Below are positions 29,601-63,559 of a stretch of DNA of 64,000 nucleotides, piece by piece. The position numbers and the translations under genes are program-made. Below the pieces are notes generated by a model. It was not told where the DNA came from, did not search any database, and saw only the letters and a program-made list of their open reading frames with translations. The DNA is from Ruditapes philippinarum (taxonomy: Eukaryota). The stretch spans positions 1 to 64,000 of the forward strand of contig NW_026866660.1 in NCBI RefSeq assembly GCF_026571515.1, read 5' to 3'. Position 1 is the stretch's first letter. Each line of letters opens with the position of its first letter.

Positions 29601-32419
29601 GTTGGAGCTATTGTTGTTTCGCTAGTCGTTGGAATTCTTACTGGCATGCTTTGTACCTGGATTGTTCTGTATAGGAAACGAAAGTCTCAAGGTAATTATC
29701 TACTAAAAATATATAATTTGCATAAATAATTATTCCTGACATACTTGCATTTTCATATACCCTACTAAAAAGATAATTATAATGCGAATATTGCATACTT
29801 TTGTGTTTTTATTTAAAAATAGATATAATAACAATACAAATAACGTGTATATTCTTTATAAAGTGCCTCCAATTTATCACTTTCCCGTTTTATAGCCTAA
29901 AAATTACGATTACCTATTGGTAAATTATCAAAAATCTCTTACTATTGTCTAGTTATTTACATGATATGTGCCATGAAATAATGTTTGTATAATGTAACAA
30001 TGTTTAATTTTTTACCAAACGCTTTAGATTTCAATCAAATTACTTCATTTATGTGATAATAATTTATTATTTATACCTACTTATATCTAGCTTTTAACAA
30101 CGACCATTAAAGTGATAAAAATCTGATTTCTCAAAAGGTCAAAAACAATGGTATCAAAACTTAAGTGCTGTGAAGTATTTCGATATGACCAAATTTGTAA
30201 AAAAAATAACAAGGCAAAATTTATTTTATAATATAGTAACATACATAATTTTAAAAGGCACAATTTGATGATATTGTATACTAACAAAATAGGTCAGTCG
30301 CAGCAAGAACAACTACACTCTATACAGGCTCAGGAAACTGTGTTTAATAACATTTTATCAACATCGTAAGTAATATATTTTTCTAAATCTTTAAGTTAAA
30401 CTTGTAAATGTTGTTAATATTTCGTTTTAGTTAAGAATATGACTATGAACAATATTCGGAGATTGAGTCAGACATAGGTGGACACAAAAACAGCAAACAA
30501 ACAAACAACAAACTATGTTACATAGTCTGTTTGAAAAGTCATGATTTATTGGGCTACTTACAAGGACAATTGGGCCATATCGATATCGCCGTAATGATTG
30601 GATATAAGTTTGAATGTAATTATTATTTTTAGAAACATGTACGAGCAACTTCAAAACCGGACAGAAATGGAAAACAAAGCAAATTATGACACTCTGAAAG
30701 GTAAATGTTTGAAAGTACTCGTTTTGTCCTAAATATAGTGTTGGTATAAAAACATTATTACTTTTAACAATAAATTCTCCTCAAGCTGGAAAAATCAATT
30801 CAAGTAGTATTTATTATATCATGTTCATCCACCAACTAGTTCTGCTTAACTGTGCTCGTTCGTCCATTAGTAAAGAATTCCCAAGCAAGTATTTTGACAA
30901 CCAAGTATAGAAGGATCTGAAGATTACGATAGTAGATTCATTTCACAAAAAAGTTTTAGTCGCATCAATTTGATCTAAAATTGGTTTAATCGTGTTATTC
31001 ATGTAATATTATATCCATACATTAAGAAATCTTAAAATTGATTTATTTTTATTTTTGTTATATTGTTATAAACAAGGTAACATCCAAGTAAGAAATTATG
31101 GGTATTTCCGTCCTAGGTGTAAAAATTTTACATACTTTAATGGTCTTATGCTCCAGGGGTCATAATAAGTTATATGTGACTGCATATCAAGAAAGATTCT
31201 ACATGTAGAAGGTAATTCCGAAATTGGAAGTGTTCTCCCTCAACAGGTGCGTGGAGGACGGAAGACGGAGAATACTTCCGGTAGGATTTACCTTCTGTAA
31301 ATATCGTCTACATGTAGAATCATTTCTAACATACAGGCACATAAGACTTAGTTTCACTCGTGGAGCATTAGGCCATTAAAAAGTATATAAAAACCAGTTG
31401 CATGTGTGTTTGACCCATTTGGTCTCTCTGTTGATGCATTTCAATCGTAACATGTCATGACGGTCTCATCCTGGGCAAAATCTTATTTTTGGGCTTTTCT
31501 GCTTTTCTGAAGATTTGCTCATAGTCAGTTTTGATAGAAAAATATGTATTGCATTGATTCCATGCAAAAAATCCGGCAAAAAAATGACACCGAGAATGGG
31601 CATACCAATTATTTTCGTACTTGGATGTTGCACACCTTGTCTATAACAATTTAACAGAAACATAATATGTTTTCTTTTATTTTACATATTTTTAATATTT
31701 GGATAAAATATAACATGAATAACAAGATTAAACATATTTTAGGTCAAATCAATGCGACAAGCACTTTTGATTTTACGTACTAAATCGTATGCGTATTTTT
31801 ATGCTGCAGAAATATTGCTTTCCTTATTACATTGTACTGTATGGAATCCTAATCGTTATCAATTACCTTGATTTAGAGCAGACATTTATCATCTGACATG
31901 TAAAAATAAAGATGCATTACTAAATTTATTGTGATGACCTTCGTTTTAAATATTTCATTCGACCATGTTTAGCTGTTTTAACAATACATCAACATTTTGA
32001 ATAATTTCAGGCGATTCTGGTAACAAGATAAGCAGGTCAGTAGAATTCAATAGAATCTTTATTTAAGACATTTATGTAACAACATTTACGTGAAAGTCTG
32101 GAACTATTTCTTGAGTACTAAATACACATGAGTGTCTTTGAAGTATTGAAATATAATAATAGTTAAAATCAATGTCATTGATATGGTAACACGATTTCCA
32201 AATGATTTTCGTGTAAGATAAATATGTGTTACAAAATTATATGGATCAATTTATTTTATTATGTATTTCAAAAACAGGCTATGTTACTTATTTAAAAATT
32301 TAAGTGTTCATATCTATTTTTTTTATTATTTCAGCCAAACACATTATGAGAGACTTCAGCAGGGAGCAAATGAATTATTGTCCTATGAAACGCTTAACAT
32401 ACCTAATAAAAGTGCTTAA
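23676..32419 (+). CDS. Gene B: type I IgSF receptor (signal peptide, two Ig domains, stalk, TM, tail with two ITAM-like motifs), about 445 aa
   Basis: Exons 23676-23751, 24090-24515 (LTMIC..WDSLA..CDDARAYKC), 24878-25294 (IELTCTANIG..IRWRR..FECYI), 27695-27736, 29566-29691 (TM, MVGAIVVSLVVGILTGMLCTWIVLY-RKRK), 30293-30365, 30633-30700 (YEQL-x11-YDTL), 32011-32035, 32335-32419 (YERL-x9-YETL, stop). All GT-AG; the 1338-nt join is an open frame. Confidence 0.85.
25404..26116. mobile_element. MITE, same family as 1675-2157
   Basis: TACCATATAAGTACTTTTTTCTGCGG / CCGCAGAAATAAGTACTTTTACGGTA terminal inverted repeats; subterminal CGCAGA repeats. Confidence 0.7.
26225..27184 (-). mobile_element. Helentron/HINE-like element, reverse orientation
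   Basis: Hairpin CCCCCA..TGGGGG and GTCC/GTCG microsatellite at left, degenerate internal repeats, CTAGTT end at right. Confidence 0.6.
28855..29012. mobile_element. Palindromic MITE (long hairpin)
   Basis: TGTGTAAGATG.AATTTTATTTCATC...TTTAAAAACAGTATTCTCAC-TCGTGGCTACGCCACTC-GTGAGAATACTGTTTTTAAA...GATGAAATAAAATT.CATCTTACACA. Confidence 0.8.
31132..31386. mobile_element. Degenerate foldback MITE
   Basis: TTTAATGGTCTTATGCTCCA / TGGAGCATTAGGCCATTAAA outer arms and GATTCTACATGTAGA / TCTACATGTAGAATC inner arms. Confidence 0.65.
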
Positions 32420-33039
32420 CGAACAATTCGCAAACATCCAAGCTGTTGGTGACATTAATGGAATGAATAAAAACATATATAATCAAGAAATATCATTAAT
32501 AACCCCTAGTTAACCCAAACATCAAATAAATTTTAATATATTTAGATCAAATATTTCGATGGAACAATGTTATTTGTACGTAAGACTTATTAATTGTGAA
32601 CATTCAATTATTACCAGAAAATCACTTAAAGAATAACCCGCGCAACGGGAGCTATAAGGAACTGAAAAGTTATTAATTAACATGGGTCAGATAAACACCT
32701 TAAAGGACACCTGTATGCAAAATTTAAACAAACTTTATTGTATGGAAAACGAGTTTTGTCCACTTATCTGAACTGACGCTTAAATGTTAGAAGGGCCTTT
32801 TTTCGGGAACCATGTACTAAATACATGAAATTTATCTATGTATTTTCTTTATGAGCGATTGAAAAAATTATATATAGTTGAATAACTTTAAATATATCAA
32901 TAAAGTTATTTGTATTGATAGAACTTATGTAAAAATAAAGGTACTTTTATAAACTTATTGTGATGATCTTCATTGAGAATAATTCAATGTACCTTGCTTA
33001 GATTTTTTAACTATACATCAACATTTTAAATATTTTCAG

Positions 33040-33447
33040 CCGATTCTGTTAACAAGATAAAAAGGTCAGGAGAATTCAATACAGTTTTAATTTGGGAACT
33101 TTGTGTAACAACATTACGTGAAATTCTAGAACTGCTTCTTGAGTACGAAATGCACATGAATGGCTTTGAAATACTGAAATATTATAGGAGAAAATGATTT
33201 CATTGAAACACGATTAATTTTCCAAATGATTTCGTGTATGACAAATATGTTTTGTTTCACAAAATTGTATGGGTCATTGTATTATTCTATGCATTTTAGA
33301 AAAAGGCAATGTGATTCATTCAAAACTTTAAATGTTCTGATCAATTTTTGTTTTTATTTCAGCCAAACACATTATGAGAGACTTCAGCAGGGAGTAAATG
33401 AATTTTCGTCCTATGAAGCGCTTAACATACCTAATAGAAGTGCTTAA
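33040..33447 (+). CDS. Duplicate, intact alternative terminal exon pair of gene B
   Basis: Exons 33040-33064 and 33363-33447 (SQTHYERLQQGVNEFSSYEALNIPNRSA*) within an approximately 1.03-kb tandem duplication of about 31900-32930; splice sites and downstream AATAAA retained. Confidence 0.7.
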
Positions 33448-38019: not shown

Positions 38020-40855
38020 GAAATGTTCTTATATGTAACGCTTAAGGTAATGACTAAGGCTATAATCGCATATATCTCATATGAATGTTTTTTCTCCAGT
38101 ATGAATTACCAAAAGCTCCTTATACAATCGCAACACCAACAACTGATATGTGAATGAGTATTCTTCCTACTAAGTCCATGTGACCTATAATGGTATTTTA
38201 TACTGCAAACACCACATCTAAATGGTTCTTCTCCAGTATGAAGTCTCAAATGGCCCGAAAACTATCCTGAAAGCTGAATGTAGTATTAAGTTCATCACAT
38301 TCGAATGGTTATGTACCAGTATGAATTCACATGTGACGTACGCTTTTAAAGAGGAAACACTTGTGAATGAATCGTTTGCCTCATACATCACATTACAATG
38401 TATTTTCCTCATGTAAAGCCTATGAAAACAGCTATCATAACAAACTCGTTTGCAACCTATCACATTTGAATGATTTTTCTCCTGTGTTCCTCCTGTGAAG
38501 CTTACGAGAACACCCATGCCAGATTCGTTTTGTTACACACATCACATTTGAATGATTGTTGTCCAATATGAGTTCTCAACTGATTCTTAAGACAATTTGA
38601 ACGAACATTTAAACGTACAATCACAGAACTGACATTAAGATGTCTTCTCGAGAATGTATTGACATGTGACGCTAAAAGTTATCTTTAAAAACTATAATAA
38701 ACATCATACTTGATTGGTTTTTACTCAAGTATGCATCCTCAAATGTCAATTCATTTTATTTTCTGTGTTTAAGTTTAAGTACGTAAGACACATCTAAATG
38801 GCTTTGCTTTTGCTATGTGTGCTCATATGCCGCTTTAAATAACGTTTTAGACTGAATGTTTTAGCACATAAATCACACTTGAATGTTTTTTCTGATATAT
38901 GTATGCTCATATGCCGCTTTAAAGAACGTTTCAGACTGAATGTTTTAGCACATTAATCACACTTAAATGTTTTTTCTGATATATGTATGCTCATATGCTG
39001 CTTTAGAGTTCCTTTGAGACGGAATGTTCTAGCACACAGTTCACATTTGAATGTTTTTTCTTTGGTATGTATGCTTATATGTGTCTTAAGACTACCTTTG
39101 AAACTGGTTTTAAAACCACATAAATCACATTTGAATGTTTTCTCCGGTATATGTATGCTCATATGCCTCTCCAGAGTATGTTTTTGATGGAATGTTCTAT
39201 CACATAAATCACACTTGAATGGTTTTTCTGATTTATGTATGCGTATATGCTTGTTTAAATTTCCTTTTTGATTGAATGGTCTAGCACATACTTCACATTT
39301 GAATGTTTCTTCTGATAGATGTATGCTTATATGCGTATTTAGAGTTTGTTTCAGTCTAAATGTTCTAGTACATAAATCACACTTGAATGGTTTTTCTGAT
39401 AAATGAATGCTCTTATGCTTCTTTAGGTAACCTTTTAGACGGAATGATTTAGCACATACTTCACACTTGAATGTTTTTTCTGACTTATGTATGCTTATAT
39501 GCTGCTTTAGATTTCCTTTTGTACGGAATGTTTCAGCACATACTTCACATTTGAATGGTTTTCCTGATATATGTATGCTTATATGCTTTTTTAGATATTG
39601 TTTTAGACGAAATGTTTTAGGACATACTTCACATTTGAATGGTTTTTCTTTGGTATGTATGCCTATATGTTTCGTAAGATTACTTTTTTGACTTGATTTA
39701 TAAGCACATAAATCACATTTGAATGTTTTTTCTTGTGTACTACTGTAACAGTGTATGCTCATTGTGTCTTTAGAGTTTGTTTTAGACGAAATGTTTAAGC
39801 GCATACTTCATATTTGAATGGTTTTTTTATATGTATGCTTATTTGTTTTTTAAGATTACTGTTTAGACTGATTTATAAACACATAAATCCAGTTTTGAAT
39901 GTTCATTTTTCTTTGTTATGAATGCTAAAATGTGTCTAAAAATTATTCTTTAGACTTAATTTATAAGCACAAAAATCAGACTTAAATGTTTTTTCTGATG
40001 TAATAATGCTTAAATGGGTCTTTCCTTTTCGACGGAATGAACTGGCACATAAATCATTATTTTATGGTTTTCCATTGGTATGTATATGCTCATGCTCTTA
40101 TGCTTCTGTAGATAACCTTTTAGATGGAATGATGTTGCACATAAATCATATACGTATGTTTTTTCTTGAGTAAGTATGCTGAAATGTGTCTAAAGATTTC
40201 CTTTTAAACTGGATTTATAGGTAAATAAATCATATTTGAGTGTTTTTATTTTATCTTAGGCTTTATGTTCATATGCCTGTTAAGATTAGTCTTAAAACGG
40301 AATGTACAAGTCGATATATCACATATGAAATGTTGTTTTTTTTTTGCGTAATCTTTGCTCATATATTCCTTAAGATGAGCTTTTGAATGCACTATCATAT
40401 ATATCTGATTTAAATGTTGTTTTCTTAAATGTAACATCTGATGTGTTTCTCAAGATAACACGACTGACTGGACGCTCTGTCACATATTTCTCATTTGAAT
40501 GATTCGTTTCCAATATGTATTCTTCTAGGTGTCAAAATATCACTGTTATCCTTCAAGGCATCTTTTTCAGAAACATCATAAACGACTTCTATATCTTTAC
40601 TTTGCACTTTTGCTTCTTTTTTATATGAGAGTTCATTTTTCTTGAATGAATGTTAACAAATCAAATTTTAAATATCTTTAAAATCACACAGATCAAATGT
40701 GTATGTTAACGTTTTATATGAAATCAAAGTTCAATAATTAAGTTAAATTTCCCGAGTGGTTGTACACGTTTTTTACTGCAATATGTTTTCACTTTCACAA
40801 TCACCTCTGTTCTGCATCAAAACTTGATTTAAACTGCACCATCACATGAGAATTT
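38020..40855 (-). pseudogene. Tandem C2H2 zinc-finger array, disrupted; intact core ORF 39804-38953
   Basis: Nine perfect F-K-C-x2-C-x12-H-x3-H fingers with xxEK[PT] linkers. TAA replaces the Leu codon at 38953-38955 and two further fingers follow it. Frameshifted finger relics flank both sides. Candidate splice acceptor at 40856-40857. Confidence 0.8.
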
Positions 40856-45659: not shown

Positions 45660-47399
45660 CTTAATTAAAATATCTAACTTGCAATAAGGAAATTTGTGAT
45701 TCTTCTAATCTGTTTATTTATAAAAATATAATAAAAGAGTTTTAATGGCTAGAAAAGCACATTGCTAATAACAATTTTGATTAAATACAGCTATTATAGT
45801 CTATAAACTATGATAGAAAGAACAAAACAAGCAATATGGTAAACACGACTTCCCCTAAATATACAGAAAAAGTAGAATCCTTAAAGAAAACACTGAAAAC
45901 AGTAAAAACTTTTAAAAAAGAACCAGTCTCAGTTTGAATGTAGTGGTTATATACTTATAACAGCTTAAATTAATCCATTGTTTAAATGCTTGCATAAATC
46001 ATGGTCTTTCAAAAGGAATTTATTTGAAAGACCCGTACTAATTTCCAGGGATACTTCTGATACATTGGTTTAATTGAAGTTTGATAGCAATCAATTTAGG
46101 GTTATTTACAATGAATGTTTTAATTTATGTTTATTTATAACCTCTATGCCCCATGATTTTATACAATATTAAAATGCAACTAGTCTATAGACAATGTTTA
46201 AATGGTTGGGCTGTTGGACTGTATTAAAAAGATTTCTGGTGCTGAGGTATGGTATTTTGAGAGTCCTTGGCTTGAGTCCCAGTCAGGCTTTATATTCTTC
46301 TCCCCCTTTGATATAAATGGATATTTCCAGTTTATCAATGATTTATTTAATCAAATTTGTGAAAAAAATAATGTCAATAAATTTAACATATGACTTCTTT
46401 TGTATGAAGCAAGTAGGAACTTGCCAACACTAAATTGTCAGCATGTAGACTGAAGCCCTTAATCAATTTCTTTCTTGTAACCAGTGTGAGTTTTATGCCA
46501 CATGACCTGTAAGAATTTACATATGTGTAATACCACAGGGGTATTTCCTTTAGGACTACTAAAACAAGAAGTAAGAAACGCAAATACATATAGTCCTATC
46601 CAATGTTCACAGGTCGTGGGATTGGCAGACAGTACCAAGTAGGACCGTATCAAGGGTGAGCTTAGATCAAAAATGTCATCAATTTTTTGGACACTGGCAG
46701 ACAGTGATATTCAACCCCCCACCCGTTAGATCAGTTAGGAAAAATTGTCCCTGGGTCTTCTTATTTAAATTTGCTTTCTTGCGAAAGCGAAAGTAGGTCT
46801 TAGAGGACTAAATATTTTATAGAAAATATAAAGAAGGAAAATATTAGCGATTAATGCTTACTAATCTGGAATATATACCAGTGATTATAGATGTATAATA
46901 TAGCACATTTATAAATATATAAATTGGATAATGTCATATAAATTTCATCGTAGTTTAATATAAACAGTTTTTGGAGTTCCTCACTTCTCCCAATCAATGA
47001 TGGAGCATGAGGTTAAGTGGTCTCCTCATTTTCCCAATTTTGCACAATTACAATGGCGGCCACAAAATGAAAGTTAAAGATCGAAATAAAGACAGCGTTT
47101 AATAAATATTATCATAATGCTTAATCTAAACCCTTAAAAATCTGCATGTCTAGCAATCATTTATTAAATCAAAAGGGTAAAATACCACAGACTAATATAT
47201 CAGAATGTTTTTAAGCACTTTATTGTCTGCGTGCTTAAAATCTAGCATTTTAGGTGAGCATTTATTGCTTTGCGCCTACGTATTGTGCACATAATCGTCA
47301 ACCGAAACGTTCATCCAACTATATACACACATTTCCAAATCAAAGATTTGTACAATTTGAAATATTTATTTCACCTGACAAAAAACAGTCCAATCATAT

Positions 47400-50050
47400 G
47401 GGGACCGGTAAAGTGTCTGGTATTTTAACTGATGCAGCTATAAGTTGTGATCTTATAAAGAAAAACGTTAATCATAGGAAGTCTAAGAAAAACAATAAGA
47501 TTTGGTTTGAGAGTGATTGTAAAAATCCTCGTATTCAATATATGAATTATAAAAACATGTATAGCAGGAACCCTACTGCAGAAAATAAAGCTAGTTTAGT
47601 TTGTAGTAGCCGACAGTATAAAATAGAAGTTAAGAAAAAGTTTAGAGCATATCAGAAAAGCATTGTTGATAAAATTAAAGGTTTAAAAAATAAAGATCCT
47701 AGATCTTATTGGAGTCTATTGAACAAATATTCAGGTGAGCGGAAGGAAGTTATTAACAAAGTAACAACTGAGGCTTTTTTTTATCATTTTAGTAAATTGA
47801 ATGAGGTTGACACTCAAGTTGACATTGATGACTTTGATATAACTAATGTCTCGTCAAATAACTCTGATTTAGATAAACCATTTACTGTATTAGAAATACG
47901 TAAAGCTATTATTTCACTGAAAAACAATAAAGCATCATCTTCCTTTGATCATGTATTGAATGAATATCTGAAGAATGTACCCGACAGCATGTTTGATGTG
48001 TTTTGTTATTTGTTTAATATTATTTTAGATTCTGGAATTTTTCCTGAAGTTTGGAGTAAAGGGATTATTTTACCAATATACAAAAACAAGGGTAACATAG
48101 ACGACCCAGATAATTTTAGGGGAATTACTATACTTAGTTGTTTTGGGAAACTTTTCACAAATGTTCTAAACTCTAGACTCAATAATTTTTTAGAAAGTAA
48201 TAATATTCTCTGTGAAGAACAAGCTGGATTTAGGAAAAAGTATAGCACTACTGATCATATATTTTCTCTGAAAACTTTGATTGATTTATATCTGTCTAAA
48301 GGTAAAAAGTTATATTGTTCTTTTATTGATTATAGAAAGGCTTTTGATAGCATAAATAGAACTGCATTTTGGCAGAAATTAATTAGCAATAATGTTGATT
48401 GTAAATGTATAAAGATCATTTATAACATGTATTTACAAGCTAAATCTTTTGTTAAAATTAATTCTTTTAGTCATATGTCGGAATTTTTTACAAGTCATAC
48501 AGGCGTTTGTCAGGGTGAAAATTTATCTCCCATATTGTTTTCTTTATTTTTAAATGATTTAAACTACATTTCCTGTATTTCCTGTCACAACATTTTAATG
48601 GTCTGGATCTACTATCAAACATTGTAAATGATACCCTGAGTGATTCTGATGTTGAAATGTATTTTAAATTGTATATTCTTTTATATGCTGATGACACTGT
48701 TATATTTGCTGAGTCTGCTGAAGAACTGCAAAAAGCACTAGATGCAATGTCAAATTATTGTCAATTATGGCATTTACAAGTTAATCCTTGTAAAACTAAA
48801 ATTGTTGTTTTTTGTAAAAGTAAAAGAGGTTTATGTAATATTCCAGCCTTTAGTTTTGAAGGTAATTTGCTAGAAATTGTTGATGATTTTTCATATCTGG
48901 GTGTTAAGTTCTCTTATAATGGTAAATTTGCTAAAACAAAGAATCATTTATTAGAACAGGCAAGAAAGGCTATGTTTTCAATTATAGTTAAGGCTAGAAA
49001 ATTGGATTTGCCTATCAGTATGCAAATTCATTTATTTGATAGCATGGTAGCACCTAAATTGTTATATGGTAGCGAAGTGTGGGGGATTGAAAATGTGAAT
49101 ATCATCGATAGATTTCAATTAAAATTTTATAAACTCATATTAAATTTGAAACAAAGTACTCCAAATTGTATGCTTTATGGAGATTTAGGGATATTACCTT
49201 TATCTATTCATATAAAAAGTAGAGTTTTGTGCTTTTGGAATAAGATTTTAAGTAGCAAACAAGAATCAATAAGCCACACATTGTATGATATGTCACACTC
49301 TTTGTATTGTAGAAATGTGTTGAAACTCCCATGGATGAATAGTGTTTGTAAATTATTAGATTCACTGGGTTTATCAAATTTTTGGATTAATAATGTTGCC
49401 ACTTCTCTTCTATTGTTTAAGAAAATTGTTAAAAATAGACTGAAAGGTCAGTTCATTCAAAATTGGCATAGTGAAATGTCACAATCAAGTTAATGTCTGA
49501 ATTATAGAATGTACAAAAGTGAATTCAGATTTGAAAAGTATTTAGATATTTTACCATCTCATTTAGCTTTGGTACTATTGCGCTTTAGATGTATGAACCA
49601 TAAAATGCCTATTGAGTCTGGTAGACTTTGTAATATACCAAGAGAATTAAGAGTGTGTAATTTATGCAACAATAGCTCACTTTGTGATGAATATCATTAT
49701 TTATTTAATTGTCAATTATTTAATACTGATAGAAAAAAATATATTACTAGAGAGTATAGTACTAATGTTAATTCAATCAAGTTTTCTATGTTAATGAATA
49801 GCACAGATAGGAGTATATTGTTAAAACTTGCAGTATTCTGTAAAAAAATTATTTCAGCATTTAAGTAACTGATAATTAAGCTTATTTTCATAATGTAACA
49901 TTTTCATTTTTGATTTATATTTGCCATGTAATACATCAGCATATTTCGTGGATATCTCTTTATATGTCATACTTTATGTATATATTATTGTATATGTGAC
50001 TGATGCCTCTATGAGGCCCAGCATTTTCAATAAACTGTTCAAACTGTTCA
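47400..50050 (+). mobile_element. 5'-truncated non-LTR retrotransposon (RTE-X-like), ORF2 reverse transcriptase disrupted
   Basis: RT motifs PIYKNKG..PDNFRGIT, EEQAGFR, FIDYRKAFDSI, GVCQGENLSPILF and LLYADD; C-terminal CxxC..EYH..C knuckle. Frameshift near 48570-48650 and stop at 49491-49493; no endonuclease domain. 3' end AATAAA overlapping (AAACTGTTC)2. Clade assignment is inference. Confidence 0.9.
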
Positions 50051-51042: not shown

Positions 51043-51259
51043 GGCGTATATAAATAAAAGGGCAGTAACTCCTGTATTTTAGTTATCCTAAATTATGTTG
51101 CAATATTTTTACAGTAAGTAATTGTTGTGCTTATGGTTATATAATTCGGGTCTGCTGCAGTCATTTTCTGTGTTTTTTCATTATTGTAACGGTAGTGTGG
51201 TGGTGTTGGTACTTTTAAGTCCTGATCACAGCAGTTATATATTTATAGAGAAAACAGGA

Positions 51260-52640
51260 ATCCCTAAAGAAAGCCCAACACGGCAAAATTGAAAATGTTG
51301 CATCGCGCCTGTTTATGGACGGTACTGTCAAATGCAAACTACCGTCCACGCCCCCTCGCATCGACTTAAGCAGAATTCAACATTTAACATGAAGTTAAAC
51401 TGGTACAATTTTGAAACATCCGCAGATGTGTTCATATGGCAGTCATCATGGTAGAATCTTCAATGTGACACGTAAGTGCCATTCCATGAAAAGTGGCATA
51501 TGATCCCCAATTAAAAAAATGCGTGTGCCCTAAACGAGAAAACAATGGGCGGAAATAAATAAAATGGAATTCTGAAAGGGGATCTGAGGTTATGAAGCCT
51601 GCATAACACAGATAAGACGTCAAAAGCAAAATATATAAAAGCAGGCCACATATCCTAAGGGTGATTCAACAGTATTCAAGTGAGGAATACTGGAACCACG
51701 CAACAAGAAATAGCCGAATAGAAAGCACTAAATAATACTACCACAAGCACAACAATAATGTCGTTCTTAACGATCTTTAAGGATCAAAAATAATATATCT
51801 GATTGCATGTATGGGGCGACTTTTAACAGCCTCCACACGACACAGACATCGCTGATGTGGCAATAAAATAGAGAAAACAAGAATCCCCAAAGAAAACCCA
51901 ACAGGGCAAATTGAAACTGTTCCAGGTTCGATATGATTGAGCCTATTCATGGACAGTACTGTCAAGTGCAAACTAACGTCCACGCCGCCTAGCACCGGCT
52001 TAAGCCAAATTCAACATTTATCATGGACTGGTACAATTTTGAAAACTTCCGGAGATGTGTTCATATGGCGTTTATCGTGAAACCTTCAATGTCACACGTA
52101 AGTGCCATTCCATGAAAAGTGGCATATGGTCCCCAAGTAAAAAATGCGTGTGCCCTAAACGAGAAAACAATGGGTGGAACTAAATAAAATGGAATTTTTA
52201 AAGGAGATCAGGTTATGAAGCTTGCAAATCACAAATAAGACGTCAAAAGACAAATTTAAAAAGCAGGTAACATATCCTAAGGGTGATTCAACAGTATTCA
52301 AGTGAGGAATACTGGTACCACGAATAAAAAATAGCCAAATAGAAAGAACTAAATTACTAAAATGACAACAATAATGTCGTGCTGAACGATCTTTAAGGAT
52401 CAGAAACATAACATCTCTGATTGAAAGTACGGGGCGACTTTTTACAGCCTTCACACGGCACAGACAACGCTGATGTGGCAATAAAATAGAGTAAACAAGA
52501 ATCCCTAAAGAAAGCGCAACAATGCAAACTACCGTCAACGCCCCATAAACATCAACAGATGTGTTCAAATGGCGGTTATAATGGAACCTTAAATCTGACA
52601 CATTAGTGTCATTCCATGAAAAGTGGCATATTGTCACAAA
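51260..52640 (-). repeat. Tandem array (two copies of about 630 bp plus a partial third) of repeat family R1
   Basis: TGGTACAATTTTGAAA..CATTCCATGAAAAGTGGCATA..ATGCGTGTGCCCTAAACGAG at about 51401 and 52030, partial at about 52555-52630. Confidence 0.8.
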
Positions 52641-53727
52641 GTAAAATCAAAGGGCTGCATGCTCTGTGGTATTTTCTGATCTTTCCTGTATAAGTTTATT
52701 TTTATTTACTATTAATCATCTTACGCAGCGACTGCGTTTAACAGTTTGTGATTGATACATATGGAATTTTGCATGCTTAGAGTTGCATCAAAAATCATTT
52801 TTCATTTTTTATTACAGCCACACTTTATTCTTGCATATCGTGGCAACTTCCTTACAAAAGACACTAAAAAAATGTTGCCTCGACAAGGATTTTAACCTTA
52901 GGCCTCTCACACCCTAAACGAGCGCGCTACCTCTGCACCACAGTGAAGTAATACGTATGTAGCGTGAAAAATAACAAATATATTGTAATTCTAAAATTGA
53001 GAATTTTCATTTCGTATTTGTAATCCTTATTAATTTCGAGGTATTTTGTTCACGATAAACCTGTTGTTAAACACTGATGAAAATAATTTAACGAAAATCT
53101 TGTCGCCAAAACAGTCCGACATGTATATATTCCATTACTCGACAGTCAGATTTATTTGTGTACTACGCTCTGGAGTATTCGGTAATCGACATAGCTAAAA
53201 ATAGCATTTTCATTTATTAAGTTTTACGGAAATAGTCGAACATTTTTCATTGGGTAAAAAAAATATTCATGCGCGAAATTTGTGATTGTAACCTCATATT
53301 TCTATTGACTAATGTAAACTTTTAATGCACTGTAATTCGTTCAATGCCTACATTAAAAATTATTCTTTCTTTTTAATTGCTGGTTTTTAAGCAGTTTTGA
53401 GTGACAACTGCTTTGCGTTGTTAGGTCTGTGGGGAAATTTTGTGTTAGACCGTGGATGTTAGCTTTGCATTTACTGATCTTGCGATCAGAAAATACAAAA
53501 ATGCGTGTGCCCTAAACGAGGAAACAATAGGCCATTGAATTAACAAGAGCACAGTTCAACCACCGCATCATTATTGTAACGGTAAACTATACCTTAAATT
53601 AAATTTTAGATCTAGTCCATAATCTAATTTATCTATGTTTATTGTTGAATGAAATGACATTTTGTTTGTTAAACCGTTATTTGATATAATAATACATCAA
53701 TACATTTATATTTATGTAACTGTGACA

Positions 53728-53910
53728 TATGATTACCGCCGTATTAACACATCCGCAGATGTTCCTTAATTCAAAATTTCACCATTTTTGTGTTTTAATG
53801 TTGAATTCTGCTTAAGCCGGTGCTGGGGGAGGGGGCGTCGACGTTAACTTGCACTTTCCAATACCGTCCATGAACAGGCTCAACCAAACCAAACCTGCAA
53901 CATTTTACAA
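53728..53910 (+). repeat. Dispersed repeat family R1 copy upstream of gene C
   Basis: Colinear with 10220-10395. Confidence 0.75.
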
Positions 53911-55332
53911 TCTTCACCATTAACCCCCCCCCCCTCCACACACACACACGTGCATGGAAGCCAGAATGGACGTGCTTAAAGAATGTTAACACAACGCCTG
54001 AGTTCCAGCTATCATATCGCGCATTTCCAATTAGAAACATGGCGAATATAAACAATAACCCATAAGTGTGTATCAATAGCTTTTTATCTCAAATAAAATA
54101 GATAATATAAATATAAATATGCCCTTACAGCAGTGTAGATATGAATGATAGAGCTTGTACGCAAGTCACTGAGTAATACAGATTTATAATTATGTAGACA
54201 GAAATGTCATTTCTTTAATATTCTTTGTATTTTTGTTGATTCTTATTAGGACTACGAGTTAGAAGTTAAAAAGATGAAACAGTCATATCATACGTGAAAA
54301 ACGTGTTTAAATTTTCCATAAACATTGCATTATATTTAAAAAGTACTGTAAATTACCTGTTTTGTTCCGTTTTCGGATAACTCCTAATTTACTCCGTTTT
54401 CGATAAGTACACGACATGACATTGTTCCTTCAACAACGTGGTAATCCTCATTATAATTAAAAAGTTATTATGTCCAGGTCATCTCATGGTAAAAGTCTAT
54501 TTTGCCTTAACCCTCCACCCCTGTAAGATAAGTCGCGTGTTTTAAATGGTGCTTAAATATTATGAATGATTTGCGTTCTTAGGATGACATGATTTTGCTG
54601 TTATGAGTGAAATTGTAAATGCATACCCTACTATTGGAAAAAAAGCTAAATGAGAATTTTACTGAGTCCTTCCAAGTCAGTTGGCAAAATGATGTCAATA
54701 ATAATTTTTGATTCAGTTGGAACTATATTCAGTCTTATGGTATAACAGAGGCAACGTCTGTACTGACTGCAAGTTTAAATTACGGACAATTTTGTTAACA
54801 ATACTTTATATATAGTACATGTAATAGTTACCTTACGAGAAATAGTCTGTATTGTTTTGTCAAACCAGTGTTGCCATTTGAAAAAAAATGTATGTGCATA
54901 CTTTTAATCATTGTTTTTTTAAACAGTACTTTCTATGTAAATGTCAATAGATTTAAAAGTCATATAGAACTTTTTTAACAAATGATTAAAACATTTATCA
55001 AGCTGAATCTTCTGCAACTTTCAATACCATTGGTCAAAAGTAATTTACCGCAAATCAGATTTTAAGTATAGAGATTATTTTGTACTTAATCGTAAATCGT
55101 AAACTGGTTGTTATGCACCTTGGTGCACAGTAATTGACTACTGAAATAATATGAATAATTTAATCAGTCCATAGGTACATGTTTTATGATAACATTTAAT
55201 TAAATGTTACTTTGATCAATATATTTGGGGCATTATGTACATGAACAAATACGGTTTGATAATTGTTGAATAAATATTATCACTTCACTGGTTTCATAAT
55301 GATATAAAGAGGAAGTTTTGTATTGTTTAACT

Positions 55333-58300
55333 ATGTCATATTTAAATCTTAAATTTCTCCTTTTCTTTATTGTATTCACAGCAAATGAAGGTAAGTTATA
55401 ACACTGATTTGTTTCAAATATTTTCTTTTATTAATTTCCGTTTTATTCTACGCAAAAATTGATTAGAAAATGTTCATTCCTTGAAAGTGAAATGATCCCT
55501 AATAGAAAGTCTGCAGTATCATAAAGCATTATTATGTAAGTATTTGTTTCATTCATGACAATAAAACCATGAAGAAAAACTGTGGATGTTGTTAGTGTGA
55601 GATACCTTATACAATAAAACAATTTATATAATCGAAATATTATTATCTAGCTTTTTAATGTTTATACTTAATAACATGAAACTCTATCAACATTGCTTTA
55701 TTTCCTTTCTTTTCACACTGTTTCAAGAATATTTCAGAGTATCCAATTGATATATTTCCATTGTTTTGTCAATAATTTACTTACTCCATCGTAGACCAAT
55801 CTATTTTAACATTAGTACATTTCAACGTTACACTCGTATAATACTATTTTCAAGCTCTGTAGTATGATATAAGTCACATATAAAGTTTGCAGCGAATTAT
55901 TACATTGTTATATTGGAAATAATGTTATTCAAAATGTCGTATATTCAAAACTTTTGTTTTTCAGATGCATTCATGACACAAACTGGTTCCGACGATACAG
56001 GTAAATTGTTAAGATGATTCTACAAAACATTTCGGAGTTCTGTCCAGTTGGTCTCTCTTGTACACATGTATGTAATGCGGTAATTGTAATGTGGGCATTT
56101 TATGTATGCATTGCGGAAATTATAATTTGACATATTAGTTCAATCGGTATGCATGTATTTAAACTATCAAAAATGTTCCACAATACAACTTCTTTAATCT
56201 TATATGCTTACTTAACATTCTGAATTTGTTTAATTCAATAATTGTAATGAGACAAATATGTAATGCATTACACAACATTATTTCACATGACTATCAATCA
56301 AAAAAGGTTAATTATTTCAAAAAACATTAAACCGTCATTAATGATATATGATCACTTTTAGCAGCTCTCCAGGTAGAATTATAGACCTTCAGTAAGCAAG
56401 TCTAATAGATTTCAAAAGCCCAGTGCTAAGAATGTATATATATAATATAATATCAGGATTTTTTTTGTTCACTTTTTCAAGTCAGGTCCTAAAATTTATG
56501 TTATGCAGTTACTGTATAATTTGGAAGATTTAGAATCAAAGTATGAATGTGAATGTTTCAGAAAGTATTTAAAGTTTATGTAAGTCATGCATTAAACATG
56601 ATATGATCCTGATGAATACGTGTAATTGTTTTGGGTAGTTTTGAAAATGGAACAAAACATTAAGGAATTTAAATGTCAAAATACAAAACAAAAATGACAG
56701 GCCAACAATAAAGGATCTGGTCAGACTGCGCGGATAAACATGTTGATCTAGCTATAATGCTGGTGACAAAAGGCGCAGCTGGCACTGTCGGTTCTAGCAG
56801 GGTGGACGAAATCTGATCTTCTTAAACCCATTTAGACATTAAATGTACACAAAAGTACCATAAAAAGTGCTAGTCAAGAAAATGGACCCATCGCTATATA
56901 TAACATAAGTTATATCATTACACCTGTATATAACATAATACATACATTATATTTGATTTGAAGAGATAATTCAATCATTTCAGGATACGGCGATTTTGAC
57001 CTACCATTTATTATTTTGGTTGGCATGGGCGTATTAGTGTTTGGTTTTCTGTTTGGTGTTTGCTGTGCTTGTGCGCTTTTACGCAGAAAAGAAAGTGTAA
57101 AAGGTAGCATTATGTTTGTTTATGATTGTTTTAAATCACTAATCTTGCTAAAATTTTGTGTTGACATTTTAATGCTTTGTGTAGGTCAATATATAAGAAA
57201 CGATAAATTGTCATTCTATTGACAATTGAGATTTCTATTAATATTTGAATTGTTTATTGGACGCAAATACAACACAAAACATAAGGAATGTAGTACACAA
57301 AATTATCTTCAATTCAATACCATTAGAAGAACCACTGAAACTATAATGTTGGAAATTTGGCGCATCTATTCAAGATATTGAAATAACCGTTTACTTATGT
57401 TGCAATAGTTAAGATACCACTTAAACATTTTATCCATCGAAAATTACTTAAAATTACCTGCATTTCATTACTTGAAATAAAAAGCTATAAATACTTTGTC
57501 TACAAACCCAATGATATACTATTCTCAAATTTGATATCTCAACATATTGGTAATTTCTACACAGTTAGCACTATATATTATTGTATAATAAACAAATAAG
57601 TACCCACTAGGTACTATGTACATGAGTATATCTTCACGATAGCATTGTCTGAAATTGATTCAATTTGCTATTAGGCAGAATACGTCCGATGAAGCAAGGT
57701 CAACAAAAGCCAACACAGTCTGGGGAGACTGGCTTCATTGTTTTAAGTCCTATAGAGTAAGTTATTTTATGGTCTTACACAATGTATTTATAGTGGCATA
57801 TTTCTGCCAACAAATAAGAACTAAATTGATAACAACATTAATAAGCTGAAACGTAAGTTAGTGTTGGTGTTTAGACTTACCTATCTGGTTAACAAGATAT
57901 ATTTTCTGTAATAAAAGTAATTTAAATATAAATATCTATTTATCAAAAACTGATAACACTTGCTCGACTATTATCTGATATTAGGTGGTTGTCAATGAAA
58001 GATAGTTGTTACTTATTATACAAGATAATTTTTGTTTAAATCCATTTGATATTCGTGCTTTTTGGTATTTTATAACTATTTGTATAACTTGTTAAATTTA
58101 CAGGTACTTAATTATTGTATAATATTTCGGATATTTTCCTTGCACAAACATTATAAGAGCAAATTAACTTAGTTTAGATGTTAATTTCATTCAGAATTCT
58201 GAAATATACCTGATTTGATTTAGTAAAACAGTAAAAATCACTTTTATGCATACTAACTCATACGAAGTAAGATAAACATTTTTATCTGATATTTTATCGG

Positions 58301-61300
58301 GTAACATAAATCTTTTATGTATAACCACCAAATATGTCAGATAAAAGTTTTTCGTATTATCTTGCACAACTAAAAAATTATTTATTTATACAGAAAATTG
58401 TGCATCAGATAAACGACTTACTAACATAAATATTTTAAAGATATACAGATTATTTATTTATTAGTTATATTTTTTAACTGGTAAGTGTTAGCACGGTGGT
58501 TTACTTGAAACTATAGTGAAAAGTTCAAGATGAATTTTAGAATATTTTATATTTCATTTATTATTCACAAATAACTTACTTAGAAGCAAACAAAAAATCT
58601 ACGCTTGAGATGTGTAAAGAATGGACTCTAGAATTAGATTTGAAGTGAATATTATCGTTGTATTGTTACGTTAGAACAAGTATCAATCTCAATACTGCAG
58701 CCATGTAAATTTTGAATTTTAATAGAACATTTAAAATTATTATTTCAAGGAACAATAACGCACAGATTCAAACGGGAACAAAAACAGAAAACAAACAGGT
58801 TAATGCTTCGCAAGACGGTAAGTTATTTCTTACATTGCAAGAATGTTTGATCCAGATCATTTTCCTAATATCTGACATTTTTTGATACGTGTTTTCGACA
58901 CATCTCAAGCATTTATTTAACACGATGTACGTATGTGTAATGTTTATGTGTTTGTTGCTGTTTAACAAAATAGGTGCAGTAAAGAAATCGAAGACTCGGA
59001 TAAAACAGACTCAGGAGACTCGATTGAAAGATTCTACACCTACACCGTATGTTATCCTTTATTGTTTTGTTTGTTCACATGAACTTTGTCTTGTATTCAT
59101 ATATTTTGATTTGTTTAAACATTTAACTTATAAGAAAAAGAAACGTCTCTAGCTTTATACCATCTGCAAAAATTACGCATTGATAAATTTTAGAAAAGAA
59201 TTATACGTACAGACAACCGTTCAGGTCAAACCAAATCCCAATTTCGTTGAATTTGATTTGATCTGTATTGCTTTCATGACAAGATCGTAATTTGAAACTC
59301 TTTTTTCCGTATCTGTAAACTCTTTAAGTTTGTAATTTTTAGTCATAGTTACGAAGAATTTCAAAACAGAACAGACGCAGACAACGAAAATATTTACGAT
59401 TCAATAGAAGGTATGTTATTTCTCTAACCTTTCTCTAACTCGATTTCGCACCCTACTGTTGCTAAGATACATGTATAGAAATAATTGCACAAAAGAAATA
59501 ATAAGAAAAAAACTATTTTATCAAGTTTTCAACAGTAAAAACTTACGTCTTAGAATGGATTGTATATGGATTAAATTATTGGCGTTAGTGTATGTGAGAT
59601 ATTGTTTCGGTATTGTATGAAAAGAAAACATTATAAGAACTGAAATATAAATAAAAATTCTTTGTTCTTTTATCTTTAAAATGCTTTGTAAACTATATAA
59701 CCGAGGGAGAAAACATTACATTTTTTTTTTGTCTATAGTATCAAAATCACGAGGGGTGTTGAACTAATGTTTTACACATCATAAGCAGTGGTAAAATATT
59801 ATAAGTTTAATGTATTTGCTGCTTGACAAAATAGGTTTAGCGAATGAAGATCAGCCTGAACTAGGACAGTCACATGAAGCGTCATCACATGATTCGGCAC
59901 CTTCACCGTATGGTTCCTTAGTTGTTCATATTCGTGCTTTTTTCTGCTATGAGATGTGCTTTATCTATTTGCATACGTTTTCAATTAAAAAAACTAATTC
60001 AACTAAGGCAGAAAATATCAATTATCCAAAAATAAATACTTGACTTCTAGTTTAATTTTTAATTGATTTAGTCCGTTCAAAATTGCCTTATTATGAATTC
60101 GAGCAATGTAAATGATATATGACACAATAAAAGTCAAACTTTATTTACGCTTTGTATCATAAGTATATGTGTTATTTCTTTAACAACATCATCTAAATCT
60201 GAAAGCTTTCATATTAAATTTGTAATCTTTATCGATTGAAATGTGTTCTAGAAAAAACAACGAACAAGTTCATAACAAAACAGATACAGAGAGTAATGAG
60301 ACGTATGATTCACTAGAAGGTGATTTTATTTTGTTATTTCTTCAATTGTAATGTTATTGCTTGAAATAACAAGAATTTGAAAGATTAAGTATGATTATAC
60401 GACTCAATTAAAGAATTCGTTGAACATTACGAAATGATGTATTTCTTGAATGACAAAATAGGCACAAAGACACAAGATCGACATCAATCTAGAGAGTCGG
60501 TGGAGACAGATTCGAATGATTCAGCACATTCATCGTAAGTCATCGTTAATTGTTTGCTTCAATTGAATGCGTTAATTATTATTTTAACATCATTGTTTTT
60601 TTTTTAATTTTTAGTGAAATTTGAAGTTTGACATATCTTGATCAGAATAATGAGTATCTCAATATGAATTATTAGATTATTTTGAATTTCATTTAATCTG
60701 TTCAAGTCACCGTCAGATGAATGTAAATAAGAATGCTTCCACATTGTAATTGTATTATCTGAAAAAAAATTCTAGGCAATCTTCCGAACAATGTCAATAT
60801 ACGATAGAGGCAGAAGATGGGGAGAGTGATGATTATCTTAACGGTACTTTTTTTATAAAATTGCGAGATTTATAATCGAAAATATAATTATATTATTCAA
60901 AATTAGAAATTTTCAATTATTCACGCGTAAACATTTAAAAATCTATACAGACTATGTCATTAATCCGTATTTCATACAAGAAGATCATTCAAGATACCGA
61001 TTGACGATCTAAATTTTGTGTTGATAGTTTTTAATTCTTCGAATGTTTGAGTCAATTGTTTGAATGCACTAATTTTGATTAAAAATACTTACTCATAACT
61101 ATAGTTTTTAAATAAATGTTTCAGCCGATGTCAATGAAGTACAGAATAGGTAATATAATGTTAAACTCTCATGAAAAAGATGTACTTTAAATCTAAATAG
61201 CTTATCAATCTAAAATAGTTCTTAGATACTTTACTTAGCCTGTGATGTTTATAAAATGTTTGTAAAAGTATATGAAAAAAGTTCAAGCTGAATTTATTTA

Positions 61301-61594
61301 GATTCAGGTAGAGAGATAAGTGTCATTTACGGCATACTTTTGACAGTAATTGCTTTAAATATGATTTATTTGAAGGTTGCCGAAGTAAAAAGGGTACACT
61401 AAAGTGTGTTTACATCAGTTTTAAATTATTTAGAATACAAACATTTATCATTTTTCGTAGGAATTATTTTCATTTGATATCTACATGTACCTAGTATATT
61501 ATTGTACTTTATATAGACTTTATATGTATATTGAGGTTATTTAAACGTTATTTATTTGCCTATTTTCAGCCAATCACACAGTGACACACTTTGA
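55333..61594 (+). CDS. Gene C: Ig-less paralogue of gene B; transmembrane adaptor-like protein with a repetitive tyrosine-motif tail, about 278 aa
   Basis: Exons 55333-55390 (MSYLNLKFLLFFIVFTANE), 55965-56000, 56984-57103 (TM, FIILVGMGVLVFGFLFGVCCACALL-RRK), 57675-57756, 58750-58817, 58974-59046, 59343-59410, 59835-59907, 60252-60319, 60462-60534, 60776-60843, 61125-61149, 61570-61594. All GT-AG; the 837-nt join is an open frame. Exon sizes 73/68/25 and phases match gene B. Confidence 0.78.
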
Positions 61595-63559
61595 GAGATG
61601 ATATGTTAACCAAGAGCCGATTCAATTTTAAACATGGTGCTAATTTTAAATTTCAGTTCGAAGTTTTAACCTTGTTACACCGAAGTTACAAATTAAGCTC
61701 TCTGCAGACATTTTTTTAAATGTTATAAAATTTGACTCGAGAATAGGGATATTAGAATTTGCAAATTAAGAGCACTATACTTTTAAAAGAGAACTCAACT
61801 GAAAAGCATGTTCTAATAAGAATTATTAGTCTAAATCGATAGATAACTTTATTTAATATTAGCATGAGCAGGTGTTTTGAACACATTTTTTACAACAACA
61901 AAAATACATTTTTTTTTAAAATGTAAGACTTTAAATACCGATTATGCCCAAGAATATTTTTTTTTACTTTTTCAAAAGCTTTTTCTTTTGATTTCCAGTT
62001 TTATCAAAAATACGTATAAGCTGCATACAGTCCTGATATAGTGATATAGTATTTTGTATGAAAGTCAAAATACGACCTTTTTATATATTGCTACTTTGAT
62101 GAGAAATAATTTCATATATAGCCCCTTTTTCAGGTAGCAGATATTCAATATGTTATTTTACTATTACCTAAATATTGAACAACTCATGTTTGTCTTTTTA
62201 AAAGGAAGGGCACACTTTGTTTCCAGATTTTTATTCGTTTCTGAGTCATAATGTTCATAATTTTATTAATTATCAGCGAAGTTGTTTAGGAACTCCTGTT
62301 TGTTAAAGATATATGCAAAATGGAAAAGAATTGAGATAACTCCATCAATAGATAATCAATATACCTGTCATATATTTGATGTCGAATCAATAAATTTAAA
62401 AGTTAAGCTTATATTCACTTATGAACAGATGATATACTTATTGGATAATTAAATTTGATTTGACAAATTGAATTCTTTGTGACTCTTTTCAGGGTTTGAT
62501 TTCTTTGAAACAATATAAATAGATAGATTACCTTTTGCAAATTGTCACTTTAATTCTTATTTTATTTTAGGGATGATATTGATAGAAATATTTATTTGCA
62601 TATTGAAAAATTTACAATGCCTTTTTATGTTTATGATTCAAACATATCTACGTTTACAAACCATTGTACATGTACTACAATATTTGTTCAATAATTGTGA
62701 TTAAAGTCTGTGAATAGCTAAATTAGTGAAACTGATATTTTAAATCATTAGTATAATAGTTTATTATGATGTAATATAGACATAGTTACCATGAACTTAC
62801 ATGATATTCATATACAACCACGAATCTATGTGTATAGTATGCACACTTTTTTGTTAACTTATGATTTTCAGTGCTCCTTTTGGTTCGTTTATATTATTTA
62901 AGTTTCTCTTTCAATTGTCATTTTCTTACATCATACTTTCTTTACATAAATATTGGCTTTTTCCCTTCATGTTCACTGTTTTTTTCCTCCATATACATAT
63001 GTTCGGAACATTGTAAAGATAATGCTCTCAATGCTAATAATATATTTCTTCGGATGCATGATATTGACAGCGCGGTTTTTGTTGTTCCGAACATCAATTT
63101 TATAATGACAAAACACCTATGCATGATGTCATGATGTATGTACATGAAAATTCTCCCTCTTACTGAATATGCTTGCTGTCCAAACATTATTCTAATATAC
63201 TCGCTGCCGTATCATATATGGAATTAAGTTGAAGACAACATTTACATTACAGACAAACTCTTACCACGCTATGTGTGTTATATTCAAAATGTAGTCTTTA
63301 CTCATTTATTCATCCCTAATCTCACTAAAATGGTGTGCATTCAATGGCTGTATAGTGTTATTAATCTATTTGTAGATATACCCCCACTACCCAAACTGAC
63401 CAATCATCAAAAATTTTCTAAAATGTCGTCTTTGTCTCTGGACCTATCAGATCTAATATCGTCAGATTCCTGTTTACATGAACGTGCTAGTTTGTTAGCT
63501 CGTACATGTTCTGAAATACGAAAATGACGTCAAACAATTACATAATATAATCGTCTCAC

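Follow-up and report, generated by a model that had tools for sequence, protein, structure and literature searches.

The window analysed here (64,000 nucleotides, positions 1 to 64,000 of contig NW_026866660.1 of the clam Ruditapes philippinarum) carries on its forward strand gene B (23676-32419), a receptor-family member with two Ig domains that serves as comparator, and gene A (55333-61594), a member of the same family and the subject of this study. Gene A consists of 13 exons, which from 5' to 3' measure 58, 36, 120, 82, 68, 73, 68, 73, 68, 73, 68, 25 and 25 nt, and all 12 of its introns are bounded by GT and AG. The spliced CDS of 837 nt encodes 278 aa and contains one stop, the terminal one; a preliminary description had proposed 13 small exons and a 278-aa frame, and its lengths, phases and splice sites are all borne out. 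Upstream, the presumed promoter region (54780-55332) is collinear with the locus of a paralogue, A' (C2850:7486-8196 aligns to 54780-55449); farther upstream this collinearity ends and the window has dispersed repeats.

Exon 1 (55333-55390) supplies the ATG and a signal-like hydrophobic stretch (19 codons plus 1 nt, phase 1). Flanks included, it is about 86% identical to its A' counterpart, and the RefSeq A' protein begins at the same Met; to the signal exon of gene B the similarity is weak and the phase identical. Intron 1, of 574 nt, leads directly to the stalk exon, exon 2 (55965-56000, 36 nt, phase 1-1), which is acidic and Cys-free; as had been claimed, no Ig exon stands between the two, and a tBLASTn search for Ig-like exons was negative in and around gene A and throughout 33500-64000. 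Exon 3 (56984-57103) starts with GYGD and encodes the TM helix (residues 38-64; hydropathy peak 2.7, Kyte-Doolittle, 19 residues), a CCAC cluster and a basic stop-transfer sequence, RRKE. It is homologous to the TM exons of the family and 67% identical to those of A' and a further paralogue, A''; the CCAC cluster is conserved in gene A, A' and P0001, a protein from the TM-exon search. The TM of gene A lacks a charged residue, with Val where A' has Asp.

In the tail, exon 4 (57675-57756, 82 nt) is membrane-proximal and basic, and is followed by alternating exons of 68 and 73 nt. Exon 5 (58750-58817, 68 nt) is a derivative of the ITAM exon that has lost both Tyr and agrees with the family consensus at 10 of 23 residues, exon 6 (58974-59046, 73 nt) is about 90% identical to A', and exon 7 (59343-59410, 68 nt) encodes the ITAM-like YEEF-x11-YDSI. 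Exon 8 (59835-59907, 73 nt) is open in gene A and interrupted by an in-frame TAA in A'. Exon 9 (60252-60319, 68 nt), the nearest to the family ITAM consensus (16/23), has lost the first Tyr and retained YDSL; exon 10 (60462-60534, 73 nt) is a cassette exon to which A' has no counterpart, and exon 11 (60776-60843, 68 nt) holds YTIE and YLN. Exon 12 (61125-61149) matches the 25-nt exon of gene B in length and phase, and the last exon, exon 13 (61570-61594), starts with SQSH, where its gene B counterpart starts with SQTH, and ends in TGA.

The predicted protein thus has a signal-like start, an ectodomain of 18 aa without Cys (about 20 aa had been estimated), a single TM helix ending in CCAC and a 214-aa tail, basic in its proximal and acidic in its distal part, with five Tyr. 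All the motifs listed in the preliminary description are present, from the CCAC at the TM end to YEEF-x11-YDSI, YDSL, YTIE and YLN; the last is the only YxN of gene A, and A' has none. The ITAM consensus is YxxL/I-x6-12-YxxL/I, usually with an acidic residue upstream (PMC6994640). Gene A conforms to it in spacing and in the second half of the motif; the first half, YEEF, has F at +3, so the motif is not a canonical ITAM. Pfam assigns no family to A' (P0004) or to the TM exon.

The receptor family and its Ig-less members

At least 14 loci share a common TM exon and ITAM exon behind differing Ig ectodomains. Judged from their sequences, they are a large, local family of predicted type I receptors whose module is the TM exon followed by a 73/68-nt ITAM pair; this pair encodes Y..[LF]QNRT....YD[ST][LI].G. 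Gene B is a typical case: its first ectodomain exon (Ig1) folds as a V-set Ig domain in structure prediction, by which the fold was confirmed since its Pfam Ig matches were sub-threshold only, and it possesses its own YEQL-x11-YDTL, a further tyrosine-motif tail and a TM without charged residue. Both this motif and the family consensus, YEQL-x11-YDSL, satisfy the ITAM definition.

Gene A has the family's TM exon in phase 1-1 with 73-nt and 68-nt exons behind it, and shares exon phases and acceptor context with gene B, B2, the loci on C6486, C9407 and C9537, and others. Those members have Ig-like exons, of V-set or other type, and as a rule a single cassette bearing YEQL-x11-YDSL; gene A differs from them in having four cassettes, the CCAC cluster and the derived YEEF, and Ig exons between signal and TM exon are absent from gene A, A' and A'' alike. 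The tail of gene A consists of four diverged tandem copies of the family's two-exon cassette, one of which retains the double-tyrosine ITAM-like motif, kept nearly constant by selection. The exon-for-exon homology to gene B that was first proposed holds for exon order, lengths and phases (TM exon, starting GYGD in gene A and GYND in gene B; 73-, 68- and 25-nt exons; last exon SQ.H, all phases identical) but is weak at the level of sequence within the window (E 0.012 for the TM exon, 0.009 for the 68-nt exon), whereas other family loci match gene A with E down to 4e-8 (tBLASTn, single-exon peptides, 11 loci).

Two further contigs, C2850 (A') and C5824 (A''), show the same Ig-less exon structure, which makes the layout of gene A more than chance. 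A' is annotated in RefSeq as LOC132739952, "uncharacterized protein", with the products XP_060583782.1 (171 aa) and XP_060583783.1 (169 aa); the model built here equals XP_060583782.1, and isoform X2 has a shifted acceptor and a different last exon. Gene A and A' have in common the signal exon, stalk, TM with CCAC, proximal tail and YEEF...YDSI, with about 71% identity over 170 aa and all splice sites shared. A' differs in that it stops soon after the ITAM-like motif, lacking exons 9-11, and in that 9 rather than 11 residues separate the two tyrosines. Exons 1-3 of A'' are identical to those of A', with flanks 91-94% identical; when the whole genome was searched at the DNA level for more 5' ends of the A type, only these three genes and dispersed intron repeats came up. 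The Ig-less layout is, on this comparison, older than the segmental duplication that gave the shorter copy A'. Ig remnants upstream of A' (C2850:5753-7151) were considered as the lost Ig exons of gene A and rejected: with 71-79% identity they are as far from gene B as A is from A', and thus represent a decayed B copy in a duplicated B-A-B2 block.

No public protein for gene A emerged from homologue searches: the one with A', over candidates of 94-299 aa, returned A' alone, and the one with the 41-aa TM exon returned nothing. In a 1.84-billion-protein representative search, the matches to the TM exon were all of A' type, apart from a single repeat protein that is unrelated. A metagenome scan with a 21-nt pattern common to A and A' hit three contigs, all unrelated. 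Of the conserved Ig-less orthologues for which the preliminary description had suggested looking in related genomes, none was found outside R. philippinarum in the representative protein and homologue searches or the metagenome scan; within the genome, the paralogues on C2850 and C5824 share the Ig-less layout.

Together these data indicate that gene A, a relative of the Ig-bearing ITAM receptors, is truly Ig-less and not the product of an assembly deletion. It is hardly credible that Ig exons were missed, whether by a deletion in intron 1 or because distant upstream exons are spliced to exon 2. The flank beyond 54780 is indeed rich in repeats, but the window contains no N, intron 1 of gene A aligns over its full length with that of A' (81%), and the stretch 33500-64000 is devoid of Ig-like exons. 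Moreover, the deletion between 55390 and 55965 that had been named as a refutation is contradicted by three contigs with the same signal-stalk-TM layout and by the RefSeq A' protein starting at the exon-1 Met. As for direction, the TM and ITAM cassette stands behind Ig exons at other family loci, which makes Ig loss likelier than gain and agrees with the earlier proposal that an adaptor-like gene arose by loss of Ig exons from a local receptor.

Selection on gene A

Gene A and A' differ with a dN/dS of 0.49 overall (p 0.007) and of 0.04 (p 0.001) over the 33 codons round the ITAM-like motif in exon 7, a pairwise measure that by itself separates the two lineages only in the ITAM-like region, and one that covers the upstream part of gene A since exons 8-13, the distal tail, have no comparator. 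Gene conversion can be rejected as the cause of this conservation because dS in the ITAM-like region is normal (0.30). The 505 nt of CDS compared contain a single indel, in frame, where about 30 would be expected at the intron rate. In simulations of neutral decay, ORF and splice sites were kept in 0 of 20000 runs at the full or at half the post-duplication time; no more than roughly a tenth to a quarter of that time could have been neutral (P 0.07 and 0.001). Gene A is thus, as far as these comparisons reach, under purifying selection that is very strong over the ITAM-like motif.

Possible roles of a protein without a ligand-binding domain

Because it lacks a ligand-binding domain, the protein would be unable to detect ligands on its own. 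We consider gene A a real and selectively maintained, derived Ig-less family member, and on balance favour a chain that signals or scaffolds on behalf of other receptors. Its most likely location would be the plasma membrane, with possible palmitoylation of CCAC, and Src-type kinases would phosphorylate its tail tyrosines; the phosphorylated tail would then dock SH2 proteins, Syk-type ones on the double motif and others on YDSL and YLN, allowing gene A to serve other receptors of the haemocyte surface. Bivalves have the downstream machinery for this: in the Pacific oyster, CgIgR, with five Ig domains, a TM and a classical ITAM, recruits CgSyk and activates ERK, so that an ITAM-Syk-ERK pathway runs from an Ig receptor (PMC6994640). 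Like the product of gene A, CgIgR is a bivalve membrane protein; its tail motif follows the scheme D/ExxYxxL/I-x6-12-YxxL/I, and it possesses the ligand-binding Ig ectodomain that gene A lacks.

The same features could be read in the opposite sense. Truncated receptor isoforms can silence full receptors, and gene A might compete for kinases and SH2 proteins, or join receptors via its TM and silence them. This reading has in its favour that the first half of the ITAM is degenerate (YEEF), that one or both tyrosines are gone from two of the four cassettes, and that the TM retains the small-xxx-small pattern of the family; the oyster ITAM receptor CgIgR, for its part, acts as a dimer (PMC6994640). 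Yet YEEF...YDSI is the most strongly conserved part of the gene (dN/dS 0.04), as fits a docking function, and we regard such damping as rather unlikely, bearing in mind that positive and negative roles cannot be told apart by sequence alone. We also doubt that gene A is a once functional gene now silent, that is, untranscribed or a dispensable presence/absence gene with A' as the working copy. In favour of such a loss, A' alone is represented by public protein models of this assembly, but a gene's being missing from a protein set carries little weight, and the gene would have had to fall silent within the last tenth to quarter of the time since duplication and still keep 13 exons without a stop, frameshift or broken splice site. 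Far less probable is the pairing first suggested, in which gene A would be the dedicated adaptor of its neighbour, gene B. The two lie on the same strand in the same cluster and have homologous TM and tail exons, but this tandem-cluster membership is all that links them. Gene B is equipped with its own ITAM and further tyrosine-motif tail, and its TM is uncharged; the interval between the two holds a C2H2 zinc-finger gene and a retrotransposon; in the duplicated block the B copy beside A' has decayed while A' is intact; and gene B is not as close to the ITAM-type exons of gene A as other family members are.

If gene A is a signalling chain, which known chains does it resemble? The vertebrate adaptors LAT, NTAL, PAG, LIME, TRIM and SIT, to which it was initially likened, share its tiny ectodomain, its juxtamembrane Cys cluster and its long, acidic, multi-tyrosine tail, which in gene A includes one YxN. 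In these adaptors the juxtamembrane Cys motif is S-palmitoylated, and several YxN and other tyrosines that dock SH2 proteins become phosphorylated once a receptor is triggered. To our knowledge, however, they have neither a signal-type first exon nor an ITAM, so the likeness stops short of these two features of gene A; the YxN is single in gene A and lacking in A', and Pfam reveals no homology with A' or the TM exon. DAP12/TYROBP, FcR-gamma and CD3-zeta have a signal peptide, a very short ectodomain, one TM and a double-tyrosine motif that docks Syk/ZAP-70. With its signal-type exon 1, tiny ectodomain, single TM and ITAM-like double-tyrosine core, gene A resembles these chains at least as much as LAT. 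There are differences: (i), the vertebrate chains have ectodomain Cys for disulfide dimers, while the 18-aa ectodomain of gene A has none; (ii), they have an acidic TM residue for a basic receptor residue, again missing in gene A; and (iii), the first half-motif of gene A is YEEF and its tail, at 214 aa, greatly exceeds theirs and has additional motifs. Neither A' nor the TM exon shows homology to them (no Pfam match), and gene A is of independent origin, from the clam receptor family.

We know of ectodomain-less ITAM-type signalling chains only from vertebrates. In invertebrates, the receptors linked to ITAM signalling to date have a ligand-binding domain of their own, as CgIgR does (PMC6994640). 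Here, in two paralogues, a clam gene appears to have shed its Ig domains and retained, under strong selection, the core with the tyrosine motif, which could mean that the division of labour between binding and signalling evolves repeatedly, or that truncated family members regulate receptor signalling. Gene A being small, its motif well defined and its paralogue annotated, the idea is directly testable in haemocytes. It is a bolder and unlikely proposition that A and A' together are the mollusc-born counterpart of DAP12, FcR-gamma and CD3-zeta, ectodomain-less subunits that would associate in the membrane with ligand-binding receptors devoid of a signalling tail, A' pairing via its TM Asp; a basic partner residue was absent from the 10 family TM exons inspected, neighbours included. 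If true, multichain immune-recognition receptors would have a separate, protostome origin, through the loss of Ig exons from a receptor that signals by itself.

Gene A and its Ig-less paralogue

The 13-exon forward-strand model of gene A, the Ig-less candidate adaptor (window 55333-61594), was reproduced exactly on reading 55200-61700 and joining the exons: all 12 introns are GT-AG and the 837-nt CDS encodes 278 aa, its sole stop being terminal. Exon 1 (55333-55390, +) supplies the ATG followed by a short hydrophobic stretch; the ectodomain, encoded by exon 2 (36 nt) together with the first part of exon 3, has 18 residues and is acidic, with neither Cys nor an N-glycosylation site. Strong hydrophobicity is confined to one segment (residues 38-64) in exon 3, with CCAC at its end and then RRKE. 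The 214-residue tail changes from basic next to the membrane (pI 10.8) to acidic distally (pI 4.1), and carries five tyrosines, in YEEF-x11-YDSI, YDSL, YTIE and YLN; judged by its residues, YEEF, the first half-motif, is non-canonical.

When the 1.41-Gb assembly that includes the gene A contig, C15147, was searched, the TM exon of gene A matched two other contigs at 67% identity, and the same query against 1.84 billion representative proteins returned P0002, a 169-aa protein identified by cluster look-up as XP_060583783.1 ('uncharacterized protein LOC132739952 isoform X2', Ruditapes philippinarum; isoform X1 has 171 aa). Its gene, A', lies within C2850:7486-16324, a region collinear, introns included, with window 54780-63365 at ~70-75% identity (BLASTN). 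A' retains exons 1-8 with every splice site preserved, and our model of it is identical to isoform X1 at each residue, ending where exon 8 has an in-frame TAA, right after ...YDSIEGLAK. In isoform X2, the exon 5 acceptor is 6 nt further in and a different last exon is used (C2850:14009), details that would, we infer, derive from transcripts used during annotation. Across the public protein sets, searched with single exons of gene A or with proteins already matched, A' is present and gene A was not found. Since A' has an exon 8 orthologue and its locus nothing corresponding to exons 9-11, the long tail is probably ancestral and A' a truncated derivative. The third copy, on contig C5824, is probably the other haplotype of C2850, with flanks 91-94% identical and exons 1-3 identical at 214/214 coding nt. 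In gene A, a 574-nt intron separates the signal exon from the next exon, and the window contains no N. The signal, stalk and TM exons follow each other without an intervening Ig exon on three contigs, and deletion of Ig exons during assembly is therefore untenable.

The TM helix of A' (C2850:10502-10621; L006:502-621, a stretch of that contig) has an Asp in IIILDGTAV where gene A has Val, and this Asp is also found in P0002 and in P0001, an independent JGI-derived (metagenome-derived) fragment matched by the TM exon. It is reminiscent of the TM Asp carried by FcR-gamma and CD3-zeta; no basic TM residue that could partner it occurs among ten family TM exons.

Origin from a receptor family and constraint on the ITAM-like region

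The 68-nt ITAM-like exon matches at least 11 further loci in the genome, with the consensus N.YEQLQNRTDTE.R.TYDSLEG (YEQL-x11-YDSL); at family loci the ITAM exon is preceded, at a distance of 1-1.7 kb, by a homologous TM exon. Some of these loci have Ig1 and Ig2 exons of the type found in gene B, the two-Ig ITAM receptor at window 23676-32419 (+), and others at least five different Ig-like exons. The first ectodomain exon of gene B gives an AlphaFold model (pLDDT 84.7) for which Foldseek returns V-type Ig domains, namely nanobodies, TCR V and PD-1, at a probability of 1.0, Pfam matches of the gene B exons to Ig being sub-threshold only. The family thus consists of Ig receptors with one common TM+ITAM module, apparently combined with more than one kind of ectodomain. 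In other family members (L016:385-6207, L017:692-5628 and L018:180-1549), the module lies behind at least five Ig-like exons of a type unlike those of gene B. In the whole-genome search, the A-type loci (A, A') were the sole Ig-less members detected. The ectodomain exons of gene B are all phase 1-1 and the signal exons of A and B both end in phase 1, so that the frame is kept when Ig exons are dropped; Ig loss would be more parsimonious than Ig gain. The gene A tail itself is made of four tandem copies of the cassette, the 73-nt plus 68-nt exon pair that encodes the ITAM. Among its 68-nt exons, exon 5 matches the family consensus at 10/23 positions and has lost both tyrosines; exon 7 (13/23) keeps both and has F in place of L in its first half-motif; exon 9 (16/23) has lost the first Tyr and kept YDSL; and exon 11 (7/23) carries YTIE and YLN.

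Over the 170 codons shared by A and A', dN is 0.143 and dS 0.293 (dN/dS 0.49, Fisher p 0.007), and in the 33 codons around YEEF...YDSI, one non-synonymous and five synonymous changes bring dN/dS to 0.04 (p 0.001). Gene conversion as the cause of this conservation is ruled out because dS over the ITAM-like region, 0.30, is the same as elsewhere, and because the pairwise value is near zero, both lineages must have been constrained there. Indels were also compared: the intron alignments hold 190 gap events over 3257 aligned columns, and the shared CDS (505 nt) a single 6-nt in-frame indel where ~30 would be expected (P about 5e-12). Neutral decay, which the preliminary description had named, for relatives, as grounds for abandoning its reading, was simulated for gene A with per-lineage intron rates, scoring start, frame and splice sites. 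Given the whole time since the duplication, or half of it, gene A stayed intact in 0/20000 trials; a quarter of that time left it intact in 0.1% of trials and a tenth in 7%. Neutral decay over the long term is thus excluded for gene A, and its recent death is still compatible with the simulation.

Likely role of gene A

Gene A has the architecture of a membrane protein without a binding domain, descended from ITAM receptors, and the CCAC cluster is kept in A, A' and P0001. We hypothesize that its product acts as a signalling or scaffolding chain, possibly palmitoylated, the tail of which would be phosphorylated by Src-type kinases and could then dock SH2 proteins; it may relay or damp signals, since the sequence fits either. 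Bivalves do use an Ig-receptor-ITAM-Syk-ERK route (PMC6994640; summarised too in PMC13344425).

By analogy, the short ectodomain, TM and ITAM-like tail could be likened in function to vertebrate ITAM signalling subunits, and the Cys cluster and long acidic multi-tyrosine tail to LAT-type adaptors. However, neither Pfam nor the 1.84-billion-protein search returned homology of the A type to either group. Because, in addition, gene A differs from the ITAM subunits in having no ectodomain Cys, no TM acid and a non-canonical ITAM, and from LAT-type adaptors in its signal-type first exon, absent from them to our knowledge, it belongs to neither family. It is best seen as lineage-specific. The proposal of an adaptor derived from an Ig receptor is partly supported: that the gene is Ig-less, homologous and constrained (three contigs, family exons, dN/dS) and adaptor-like is supported or plausible. 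The proposed receptor/adaptor pair with gene B is not supported: gene B carries an ITAM of its own and has no charge in its TM, the two genes are separated by a retrotransposon and a zinc-finger gene, and the cassette exons of A resemble those at other family loci more closely than those of B.

The duplicated block and its neighbourhood

Directly upstream of A', C2850:5753-7151 (L004) holds a decayed copy of gene B, its Ig1 exon frameshifted and split over three frames and its Ig2 exon reduced to the first third. These remnants could be taken for Ig exons that the A type itself has lost, a reading rejected on their 71-79% match to gene B, a divergence equal to that of A vs A'. Together with a gene-B-like gene downstream of both A (B2, C15147:70753-71851) and A' (B', C2850:21406-22474), they point to a duplicated unit B-A-B2 whose B copy beside A' has since decayed; the A type was already Ig-less before this block was duplicated.

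B2 as a whole (C15147:70753-73544; L008), past the window end, is a two-Ig gene 9 kb downstream of gene A. In its Ig2 exon, Cys replaces the Trp kept by gene B and B', and the first third matches in another frame; its TM exon (about 73335-73544) is intact and uncharged. The TM exon of B' (C2850, about 25165-25408) is degenerate. Within the receptor cluster, a 283-aa single-exon ORF (window 38953-39804, -) encodes about ten C2H2 fingers (zf-C2H2 E 2e-43), and window 47254-49868 (+), between B and A, holds a retrotransposon with three consecutive ORFs, its frame split (RVT_1 E 7e-19, 2e-10). A dispersed repeat (window 51245-52646, 53729-53914, 10221-10430 and 21636-21743, with two further copies at C2850:4076-5445) occupies the region just upstream of the end of A/A' collinearity. 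Finally, a second set of the 25-nt and last exons of gene B (window 32960-33447) follows the first (32011-32419), which would fit two alternative 3' ends.
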